Shown: piece after piece, positions 8,001 to 13,937 of the stretch
Numbering within the stretch: the first letter of the stretch is position 1
How the letters are laid out: each line of letters starts with the position of its first letter
NCBI GenBank assembly: GCA_002269645.1
Contig: NIVC01000571.1
Coordinates: forward strand, 248,001-312,000
DNA: 64,000 nucleotides
Origin: Macrostomum lignano
Taxonomy: Eukaryota
Reading direction: 5' to 3'
Made by a program: the position numbers and the translations under genes
The notes under the pieces: generated by a model
Databases searched by the model: none
What the model saw: only the letters and a program-made list of their open reading frames with translations
What the model was told of the DNA's origin: nothing

Positions 8001-11000
8001 ATCATCACCACCCCTGACAGACCCCTGCGGGTCCAACAGCCGCTCCGGTGTGGTTTTCGCTCGTGCTCGACGCACGAAGGCCCGTCGGGCCGCGTGGAAC
8101 TCGGCTCGTTCGAACATGTCCTGCGTGAAGGATTGGTGGGTGAGACTTTACCAGTTGGATGCTAATCGAACTCACTCACTCACTCACTCACTCACTCATT
8201 CACTCACTCACTCACTCACTCACTCACTCACTCATTCACTCGGAGGGGCGGAGGGGCTGAGGGGCGGAGGGGCTGAGGGGCGGAGGGGTGGAGGGCGGAG
8301 AGGAGGAGGGGCGGAGGGGTGGAGGAGCGGAGGGGCGGACGGACGGAGGGGCAGAGGGGCGGAGGGGCGGACGGACGGAGGGGCAGAGGGGCGGAGGGTG
8401 GGAGGGGCGGAGGTGCCGAGGGACGGAGGGTCAGAAGGGTGGAAGGGCGGAGGGGCGGAGAACCGGAGGTACCGAAGGGCGGAGGGGCGAACGGCTTAAA
8501 GCTCATTAAAGCCTCACCTGTCGCATATGGCTCAGCTCCCGAGCCCGACACTCCTCCATTACAGGCCGGTCCGCCGCCAGACGCGCCGCCTTCGCGCGCA
8601 GAAAATCCTCCGTTTCCTGCGGCCCGGTTAGCAGGCCCTTGGCCTGGTGTCGCACGCCAGAAGGGAAGTGGCCGGGGATGACGCGATCGGCCAGGCCGAG
8701 CCACCACGCTCGCTCTGCCGAGATCGGCAGGCAGGCGTTCACCAGCTGCTCAGCGGCCGTGGCCGAGCTCTGCAGGCGTCTCGGCAGGCTGTAGGTCCAG
8801 TACTCAGAGCCGAACAGGCCCATAGTGCGGTAGTGCGGGTTGAGCACGCAGCCGCGGCGAAGCCACACGTGGTCGGCCGCGAGGGCCAGAAAGACGCCAC
8901 CAGCGCCCGCGTTGGCCTGCACCGCGCTCACCGTCACCTGGCGCGTGTTGATGAGCACCTCGCGTACGAGGTCGTCGATGGCACAGATGTTGCTCCAGGC
9001 CTCCTGCTTGGGACGGTGGCAAGAGTACGAATTAGTGCAATGCTTCGATGAATAACTACCCAGGAACGCCGGTGTGGTAGCGTGGACTCTACGTAGGCTT
9101 GCTCTCTGACTCTCTCCTGTCTCGCTACCTAAAACGCTATCTCTCTCTCTCCTCTCTCTCTCTATTTCTCTCTATCTCCTCTCTCTATCTCCTCTCTCTA
9201 TCTCCTCTCTCTATCTCCTCTCTCTATCTCCTCTATCTATCTCCTCTATCTATCTCGTCTCTCTATCTCCTCTCTCTATCTCCTCTATCTATCTCCTCTA
9301 TCTATCTCCTCTCTCTATCTCCTCTCTCTATCTCCTCTCTCTATCTCCTCTCTCTATCTCCTCTCTCTATCTCCTCTCTCTATCTCCTCTCTCTATCTCC
9401 TCTCTCTATCTCCTCTCTCTCTCTATCTCCTCTCTCTCCCTCTATCTCCTCTCTCTCTATCTCCTCTCTCTCTCCCTCTATCTCCTCTCTCTCTCTCCCT
9501 CTATCTCCTCTCTCTCTCTCCCTCTATCTCCTCTCTTTCTATATCCTCTCCCTCTATCTCCTCTCTCTCTATCTCCTCTTGTGAACAAGAGGCTTGAGCA
9601 CTTGATGCTTGAGGCTTGATGCTTGAGCACACCCATTTATCGATCGTCTCTCCCTGGCGATATCGCCTTTATATATTGACGGCAATTCGCGCCAAATAAA
9701 CTTCACTCGACTACAGCCCTGACGAAGAAATTTAATTTCGAAATATCGGCTACTCAATTTAAATTGACTTTTTTCAGTCCTTTCTGACTTTCTACCGTGT
9801 CAGTGCCCGAGATTGGAGGCGCCCTCCTCTCTCTCTCTCCCTCTCTCTATCTCCCTCTCTCTCTCTCCCTCTCTCTCTCTCCCTCTCTCTCTCTCCCTCT
9901 CTCTATCTCTCTCTCTTTCCCTCTATCTCCTATCTCTCCCTCTATCTCCTCTCTCTCTTCCTCTATCTCCTATCTCTCTATCTCCTCTCTCTATCTCCTC
10001 TCTCTCCCTCTATCTCCTCTCTCTCTATCTCCTCTCTCTCTCTCCTCTCTCTCTCCCTCTATCTCCTCTCTCTCTATCTCCTCTCTCTCTCTCCTCTCTC
10101 TCTCCCTCTATCTCCTCTCTCTCTCTCTCTCTCCCTTCCCCTAGCACTGTAGCTATTCTCTGTCTCCCACAGTAGCGTTGCGGGCGTCTTCAATAGTATC
10201 GACACGTTTGTACGCTCATGAACGTACATTCCTGTTGTGCTGGCTTTCTATCGCTTCTGTCTGTTGCGTCATCCGTAATTTAACCTGATTTGTTAAATGA
10301 ATTATTTAAGATCGTTCCCAGTTCTAGCTGAGCTTTTACCTTTTTCGTGGACACGGTCTACAAAAGCCGGAAATTACACCCTCGAATGTTGGCTAATCTC
10401 TAAAAAGCCACTTTTCGACGAAAGCGGCTCTAGCAAGATTGGAAGTATCTGTTGTTTATGGAATAATTCGAAACTTGTGAGACGACTGCAGTGCTGAAAA
10501 CATGTTTACTTGTTAACATAGCGAGTATTTGGCTTATTCCTAGGCAGAACTAGTTAAGTAGTGATTAAAATACGAGTACAATAATAAGATAGTGCACAAG
10601 ACGCGCCGGAGTTCCACTATCACCAATTGCTCTCTGCTCACGGTGCTACCTGTCAAAAGGCAAAATTGTCCCCAGTCTGAATTGAATTTCCGCTAGTTTT
10701 TTTAGAACTGGACTTTGATCAAAATTGAACTTGAAAAGGTGTACCATAGGCGGAAAATTGCAAAAAAGATTCACCGGAGAAGCTATTTGTCAGGATCAAC
10801 ACTCAAGTTAGTAGGGATTCCACGGACAAAAAATTTTAAATCGTATTCGTTCTTCTTATCTGAACATGTGCATTTCTGTTTTCCCATTGACAAAATAAAG
10901 AAAAACGACAAAGTATCACTGTAATGCTGAGAAATCAATTAGATTGAACCCATTCTCACAGGTAAACATTGGCAAACAAGCAGAAATTGACCTTAATCCA

Positions 11001-13937: not shown

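Follow-up and report, generated by a model that had tools for sequence, protein, structure and literature searches.

A nuclear gene of the flatworm Macrostomum lignano encodes a HypX moiety fused to a second folate enzyme, a dehydrogenase/cyclohydrolase (D/C) domain of the MTHFD1 type. The gene lies in a 64,000-nucleotide stretch of the assembly GCA_002269645.1 (contig NIVC01000571.1, positions 248,001 to 312,000 of the forward strand), referred to here as the window, and all positions are given in the numbering of this window. Bacterial HypX, also known as HoxX, is the 10-formyl-tetrahydrofolate (10-formyl-THF) decarbonylase which makes the carbon monoxide (CO) ligand of O2-tolerant [NiFe]-hydrogenases. 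There is high confidence that the worm gene is real, intact and under selection. The complete mechanism proposed for it, that of a maintained nuclear two-enzyme fusion leading from methylene-THF to CO, is the favoured reading and is held with rather less assurance.

The gene occupies the minus strand between 13937 and 4797. Its seven exons form an open reading frame (ORF) of 2763 nt, which encodes a protein of 920 amino acids (aa), and its six introns all have GT..AG boundaries. Microsatellite arrays are present in every intron, and the first is mostly a (GGGCGGAG)n microsatellite (12382-12990). The product is 100% identical to PAA58614.1, a "hypothetical protein BOX15_Mlig028590g1" of M. lignano, and its only label in UniRef is "methenyltetrahydrofolate cyclohydrolase". 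The order of Pfam domains is Formyl_trans_N, Formyl_trans_C and ECH_1, followed by THF_DHG_CYH and THF_DHG_CYH_C. No HypX model was matched in an NCBIfam scan of the protein, which returned weak, sub-threshold matches to generic formyltransferase and ECH models only.

Exon 4 alone encodes the C-terminal helix of HypX, the linker and the beginning of the second domain. As the junction sits inside a single exon, the fusion is directly encoded and is not an artefact of the gene model. The linker (aa ~575-610, 8021-7914) is rich in Ser and Asp and is disordered, with a predicted local distance difference test (pLDDT) score below 50. A preliminary description, made from the sequence alone, had confined the HypX moiety to 8518-13937. 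This span is accurate for exons 1-3 (aa 1-541) and stops short of the end of HypX, as the homology runs for ~26 codons into exon 4, to ~8043, and includes R559. A UniRef isoform of 888 aa (A0A1I8GLG4) omits the first 32 codons of exon 4 (8120-8025) through use of an internal CAG acceptor at ~8026-8025. This would remove the last HypX helix, including the equivalent of Arg542.

Residues 13-567 of the protein align with residues 2-550 of Aquifex aeolicus HypX (6J0P) at 45% identity and with no large gaps (phmmer against the PDB, E 1.2e-138). Aquifex numbering was obtained after subtraction of the 20-residue tag offset of 6J0P. The formyltransferase motif reads LVLH85PGVVAD91G92GPSS...KELD120, with the spacing H(0), D(+6), D(+35). 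The five catalytic positions, listed with their Aquifex counterparts in the table below, are invariant in an alignment of 47 sequences (5 eukaryotic and 42 bacterial proteins). The catalytic residues, their spacing and the Aquifex numbering given in the preliminary description were all borne out by this alignment and by the comparison with 6J0P. His74, Asp80 and Asp109 are the proposed formyl-transfer triad of HypX, and Tyr416 and Glu426 the proposed decarbonylation residues (Muraki et al. 2019, PMC6802093). In Ralstonia, mutation of the equivalents of Tyr416 and Glu426 leads to a HypX-minus phenotype (PMC6802093).

The residues which tether the constitutively bound coenzyme A (CoA) are likewise retained, Q15, R131, S194, N306 and R542 being present as Q26, R143, S213, N327 and R559. 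The position of Q195 holds a Thr in the Macrostomum protein and is variable among bacteria as well. Within the THF loop, L56 is kept and K59 is present as Arg. AlphaFold2 modelling of the full-length protein gave a mean pLDDT of 86.9 and two well-folded modules, one on either side of the linker. By Foldseek, module 1 matches 6J0P with a template modelling (TM) score of 0.93 and a root-mean-square deviation of 1.9 Å, and module 2 matches human MTHFD1 with a TM score of 0.92. The comparison of a predicted structure with the HypX-CoA structure, which had been suggested as a check on the catalytic residues, thus came out in their favour.

One motif change, also recorded in the preliminary description, is real. 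The bacterial GDRGPSS reads ADGGPSS in Macrostomum, and its notable part is the replacement of Arg81 by Gly92. The G-to-A change preceding the catalytic Asp matters less. Every one of the 42 sampled bacterial HypX has Arg81. The five sequences of the Macrostomum clade all have G or A instead, and one fungal clade has lost the Arg independently. The structural paper on HypX makes no mention of a role for Arg81 (PMC6802093). The absence from this clade of an Arg which is otherwise invariant beside the catalytic Asp poses a concrete structure-function question.

The C-terminal domain scores 262 bits (46% identity) with the D/C domain of human MTHFD1 (1A4I), 180 bits with the best bacterial FolD and 151 bits with MTHFD2. 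A second comparison gave the same ordering, with 259 bits for the MTHFD1 type, 208 for standalone bacterial FolD and 160 for the FolD of bacterial fusions. When the domain is placed by neighbour-joining (NJ), the Macrostomum branch is long and its position unstable. The two-lobed fold is kept, as are Y52, K56, Q100 and D125, which we take to be the catalytic residues of the MTHFD1 D/C domain. The equivalents of Y52 and K56 are encoded in exon 4, at 7775-7755.

The dinucleotide site of this domain is altered. The substitutions are R173N (GNS for GRS, spliced from within 6981-5757) and H196D, S197V and K198D (CDVDT for CHSKT, 5699-5685), and four marine relatives carry S197E. R173 and S197 of MTHFD1 presumably bind the 2'-phosphate of NADP. 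Since these residues are replaced, the cofactor preference has probably shifted away from NADP, possibly to NAD+. Other HypX fusions vary at the catalytic positions themselves: Ile stands in place of the cyclohydrolase Lys56 in the bacterial HypX-FolD fusions (P0134 and P0415, of Chloroflexota), and one marine eukaryotic fusion (P0008) has Y52H, K56I and D125E. Some HypX fusions may accordingly have a FolD-like part which departs from the standard D/C enzyme.

A collinear homeolog of the gene, ~4% diverged, is present on contig NIVC01002747.1 (locus L015). It was used to estimate selection because synonymous sites are saturated against the more distant relatives. Of the 2763 exon sites, 14 are changed between the two copies (99.5% identity), 8 synonymously and 6 nonsynonymously, which corresponds to a ratio of nonsynonymous to synonymous differences per site (pN/pS) of 0.25. 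The introns and flanks are ~96% identical overall, within a range of about 86-99% in which intron 1 has the lowest figure, and contain many indels. The GC content at third codon positions (GC3) of the gene is within the range of the other ORFs in the window.

The nearest relatives are five HypX-D/C fusions of ~900 aa with intact ORFs, which share 41-47% identity with the worm protein. All are encoded on eukaryote-like transcript contigs, taken from the Tara and JGI metatranscriptomes and from two RNA-seq projects (ERR6349663, DRR256864-74). One transcript has a poly(A) signal and tail; no spliced leader was evident at the 5' ends of the related transcripts. GC3 ranges from 0.39 to 0.75 among the relatives, and all catalytic residues are kept. 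Intact ORFs of ~900 codons are present in six lineages with saturated dS. With pS at 0.70-0.86 (saturated), dN/dS against the relatives can be given only as rough upper bounds of ~0.14-0.29. The homeolog pair therefore took the place of the dN/dS comparison with related species which had been suggested earlier. The conservation of catalytic residues and intact ORFs at 41-47% identity therefore points to long-term purifying selection in separate genomes.

The gene could be supposed to be a relic in decay, or to encode a scaffold without catalytic function, its residues being kept because too little time has elapsed. The loss of Arg81, R173 and S197 and a 1-bp deletion in exon 4 of the homeolog would suit such a view. 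It is nevertheless very unlikely, as the relatives have kept every catalytic residue and an intact ORF beyond the saturation of synonymous sites, the pN/pS is low, the exons are conserved well above the introns, and the fold is predicted with confidence. The claim that the gene is active and domesticated, and not a relic, is supported by its host introns, its host flanks, the pN/pS of the collinear homeolog and its deep conservation. This applies to its domestication and maintenance; catalysis itself we infer from the sequence.

Bacterial contamination or a chimeric assembly would account for the presence in this contig of HypX, a protein otherwise typical of bacteria. This explanation was rejected and has next to no probability. 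The six spliceosomal introns are rich in microsatellites of the host type, the junction with the MTHFD1-type domain lies within one exon, the flanks hold animal genes and retrotransposons, and the locus recurs on the second collinear contig.

HypX is overwhelmingly bacterial, yet is found in several eukaryotes besides Macrostomum. It is fused to FolD in the bdelloid rotifers Adineta steineri, Rotaria socialis and Didymodactylos carnosus and in the dinoflagellate Togula jolla. Unfused forms are found in Trichoplax adhaerens (XP_002112030.1) and Trichoplax sp. H2, where the copy is automatically annotated as "HoxX", and, as a long HypX, in Ustilaginomycotina (basidiomycete) fungi. No extra domains were detected by Pfam in the long fungal homologues. 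The arbuscular mycorrhizal (glomeromycete) fungus Gigaspora rosea has the fusion in reverse order, FolD-HypX (RIB24823.1, P0156). The reverse order is seen as well on a contig of a eukaryotic metagenome (P0141, L017/L018), where the gene adjoins one for tubulin cofactor C. Most other eukaryotic HypX (P0406, P0439, P0442, P0444-P0447, P0170 and others) have N-terminal extensions of 50-90 residues, possibly organelle-targeting peptides, which neither bacterial HypX nor the Macrostomum model shows. A literature search found no publications on HypX in eukaryotes.

Trees of HypX were built by NJ from Kimura distances, and their deep nodes are poorly supported. The Macrostomum clade of HypX-MTHFD fusion transcripts has a bootstrap of 87-95%. 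Replicates are split over its sister, 38% giving a eukaryotic and 39% a bacterial one, and the search for a donor by phylogeny, which the preliminary description had envisaged, identified none. Eukaryotic HypX as a single group has 1% support. About 25 bacterial HypX-FolD fusions, from metagenome clusters and metagenome-assembled genomes (MAGs) of Chloroflexota, form a clade of their own with 100% bootstrap. The Chloroflexota fusion was considered as the donor of the whole Macrostomum fusion and rejected, given this separate clade and the fact that, of those compared, its FolD resembles the Macrostomum D/C domain least.

Independent fusions are represented by Chloroflexota, by the rotifer and dinoflagellate group, by the Macrostomum clade with its MTHFD1-type domain and, reversed, by Gigaspora rosea. 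Judged from these sequences, HypX and a FolD-type domain have come together in at least three or four independent fusions, with differing types of FolD and in both orders. Recurrence of this kind is a strong comparative argument for coupling of the two activities. Because HypX is so largely bacterial, horizontal acquisition in the long run is plausible; the HypX part is likely to be ultimately of bacterial origin, and the event an old one. A horizontally acquired gene had been proposed in the preliminary description, and to this extent the proposal stands. It does not appear to be a recent transfer specific to Macrostomum, as the nearest relatives are eukaryotic fusions and the D/C domain is eukaryotic.

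The chemistry of HypX proceeds from formyl-THF through formyl-CoA to CO, and 10-formyl-THF is its established substrate (PMC12134894). In bacteria, the CO is passed to HypCD, and supply of the CO ligand for [NiFe]-hydrogenase maturation, in aerobic species, is the sole role of HypX established by experiment (PMC6802093, PMC12134894). In the mechanism proposed for the worm protein, the MTHFD1-type D/C domain would convert 5,10-methylene-THF via methenyl-THF to 10-formyl-THF. The HypX triad His85/Asp91/Asp120 would then shift the formyl group to a tightly bound CoA, and the crotonase domain, with Tyr437 and Glu446, would decarbonylate formyl-CoA to CO and CoA. To our knowledge, neither [NiFe]-hydrogenases nor the Hyp maturation proteins (HypA-F) occur in animals or other eukaryotes. 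Because animals have no known machinery of this kind, the most likely outcomes are release of the CO in free form or use of the reaction as a one-carbon sink, and transfer to HypCD is not expected.

The classical role could still apply if the protein matured an unrecognised metal-carbonyl cofactor, either in a cryptic [NiFe]-hydrogenase or in another Fe-CO protein of the worm or a symbiont. Such a role would agree with the one that has been experimentally established, and bacterial HypX-FolD fusions do exist in Chloroflexota. It is highly improbable all the same. No hyp or hydrogenase ORF is present in the 64-kb window, the hydrogenases and HypA-F are unknown in eukaryotes as a matter of general knowledge, and the eukaryotes which bear HypX (flatworm, rotifers, placozoan, fungi and dinoflagellate) have no such system in common.

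The main rival of the CO-forming mechanism supposes that the enzyme works but has been selected for making formyl-CoA or formate. The reaction would stop at formyl-CoA, or formyl-THF or formyl-CoA would be hydrolysed to formate. Such an enzyme would regenerate THF and draw off or reroute one-carbon units, as does the hydrolase domain of ALDH1L1 (10-formyl-THF dehydrogenase, FDH). The N-terminal domain of the worm protein is homologous to that hydrolase domain (4QPC, E 9e-12; PMC6802093). Fusion to a D/C domain would suit any enzyme which consumes formyl-THF, and the invariant Arg81 has been lost twice, in the Macrostomum clade and in the fungal one. Against this, strict conservation extends to Tyr437, Glu446 and the entire crotonase domain, for which a mere hydrolase would have no need, and the CoA-tethering residues are conserved also. 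A non-CO product is accordingly regarded as rather unlikely.

Several observations tell against the reading of the gene as a maintained, CO-forming fusion. The Gly in place of Arg81, next to the catalytic Asp80, could alter the activity, and the absence of R173 and S197 could impair the dehydrogenase. The pN/pS value was obtained from 14 substitutions only. In the homeolog, 1 bp is missing from a run of G within the linker part of exon 4 (GGGG ~8017-8014; ~18613 in L015). We know of no animal counterpart of HypCD, the usual acceptor of CO, so the selected function might not be CO; this point favours the non-CO product as well. The deletion in the homeolog would frameshift the protein past the HypX moiety, and that copy is annotated as the 692-aa PAA55471.1. 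It may be a true frameshift and truncation, or an assembly error in a homopolymer.

Macrostomum has an intact, intron-bearing HypX gene under selection, and similar copies are present in rotifers, a placozoan, fungi and a dinoflagellate. No [NiFe]-hydrogenases are known from these hosts, which implies that the chemistry has a second use, so far unrecognised. The repeated joining of HypX to the enzyme which forms its substrate points to a self-contained route from methylene-THF to CO. A tentative extension is that the eukaryotic HypX-FolD fusions, that of the flatworm among them, are heme-independent CO synthases. They would turn one-carbon units derived from serine or glycine, as methylene-THF, into free CO, in a function which has nothing to do with hydrogenases. 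If this is true, folate-dependent production of CO by an animal enzyme would be seen here for the first time, and confirmation would add to animal biochemistry a folate-dependent source of the gasotransmitter CO. M. lignano is a tractable model in which RNA interference and transgenesis are available. The CO of siphonophore floats was reportedly tied to serine and to folate-rich gas glands by Wittenberg in 1960 and 1962. The fusion would be a candidate for the never-identified enzyme of this serine- and folate-linked CO secretion, a link which is speculative. A 2026 paper on the Physalia genome attributes the CO to heme oxygenase and mentions neither folate nor HypX.

The flanks of the gene in the window contain animal genes and retrotransposons only. 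The other ORFs comprise a DEG/ENaC channel, an ankyrin ORF, a Pao/BEL polyprotein and further reverse transcriptases (RT). The uninterrupted Pao/BEL element is possibly young and active. An ORF of 487 aa has a weak Pfam match to a domain of bacterial-type decarboxylases and no sequence match in the PDB; the Pfam match could be due to chance, or the ORF could be a second gene of foreign type. The 50-bp unit of the tandem arrays downstream of the HypX-MTHFD gene holds CCCTAA-like hexamers of the telomere type.

Table. Features of the HypX-MTHFD gene and of its surroundings, in window coordinates.
Feature	Position	Strand	Remarks
Exon 1, aa 1-292	13062..13937	-	HypX formyltransferase N- and C-subdomains (Pfam, PDB alignment); ATG 13937-13935; holds Q26, H85, D91, G92, D120, R143, S213; donor GTGAGG
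H85 (Aquifex His74)	13685-13683	-	codon; 6J0P alignment
D91 (Aquifex Asp80)	13667-13665	-	codon; 6J0P alignment
D120 (Aquifex Asp109)	13580-13578	-	codon; 6J0P alignment
Intron 1, 720 bp	12342..13061	-	GT..AG boundaries
Exon 2, aa 293-379	12081..12341	-	interdomain loop and first part of crotonase domain; N327 (Asn306)
Exon 3, aa 380-541	8518..9003	-	crotonase core: GAGG oxyanion-type loop, NPHY437, GSE446YW (Pfam ECH_1)
Y437 (Aquifex Tyr416)	8832-8830	-	codon; 6J0P alignment
E446 (Aquifex Glu426)	8805-8803	-	codon; 6J0P alignment
Exon 4, aa 542-680	7702..8120	-	last HypX helix with R559, linker, start of MTHFD1-type domain (Pfam THF_DHG_CYH)
Exon 5, aa 681-779	6978..7273	-	remaining D/C catalytic domain (Q100, D125 equivalents) and start of NAD(P)-binding domain
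Exon 6, aa 780-851	5552..5767	-	Rossmann part of D/C domain, with the altered GNS and CDVDT motifs
Exon 7, aa 852-920	4797..5005	-	end of D/C domain (PVPGGVGP motif) and short tail; TAG stop 4799-4797
Tandem arrays	1168-1623, 1875-2766, 3801-4161		26-bp and 50-bp units, 98-99% matches; just downstream of the HypX-MTHFD gene
RT ORF	15178-16212	+	
Pao/BEL-type long terminal repeat (LTR) retrotransposon polyprotein, 1778 aa	28784-34120	+	uninterrupted; DUF1759, RT, Peptidase_A17, integrase, DUF5641
RT ORF	35664-37571	-	
DEG/ENaC amiloride-sensitive sodium channel, 547 aa	41841-43484	-	single ORF; GC3 0.90; marks the contig as animal
ORF, 487 aa	49407-50870	-	weak Pfam match, C-terminal domain of bacterial-type Orn/Lys/Arg decarboxylases (E 6e-6)

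Among known systems, bacterial HypX/HoxX (Aquifex 6J0P, Cupriavidus necator) has the same two-domain architecture, and the Aquifex identity of 45% extends over ~555 residues. The Macrostomum copy differs in that it belongs to an intron-bearing animal nuclear gene, lacks a hyp/hox context in the window, is fused to a D/C domain and has Gly for Arg81. The Chloroflexota fusions (e.g. JBKPAZ010000221.1, CAVYFB010000011.1) similarly carry HypX followed by FolD in one polypeptide. They are the result of an independent event, and unlike the worm protein have a FolD of bacterial type with Ile for Lys56 and retain Arg81. The other eukaryotic HypX resemble that of Macrostomum in their aerobic hosts, in their frequent fusion to FolD and in their catalytic residues. 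They are distant from the Macrostomum clade, most of them keep Arg81, and their FolD parts are not of the MTHFD1 type.

In human MTHFD1 (C1-THF synthase), the D/C domain is fused to a formyl-THF synthetase, whereas here it is fused to HypX. The hydrolase domain of ALDH1L1/FDH has a homologous formyltransferase fold and passes the formyl group to a phosphopantetheine thiol (PMC6802093). Its similarity to the worm protein is far lower (E 1e-11), and FDH has a Ser in the triad and yields CO2 instead of CO. Heme oxygenase, the known source of CO in animals, forms the product proposed here by an unrelated fold and chemistry, and needs heme and O2. The route proposed for the HypX-MTHFD protein would instead depend on folate and CoA.

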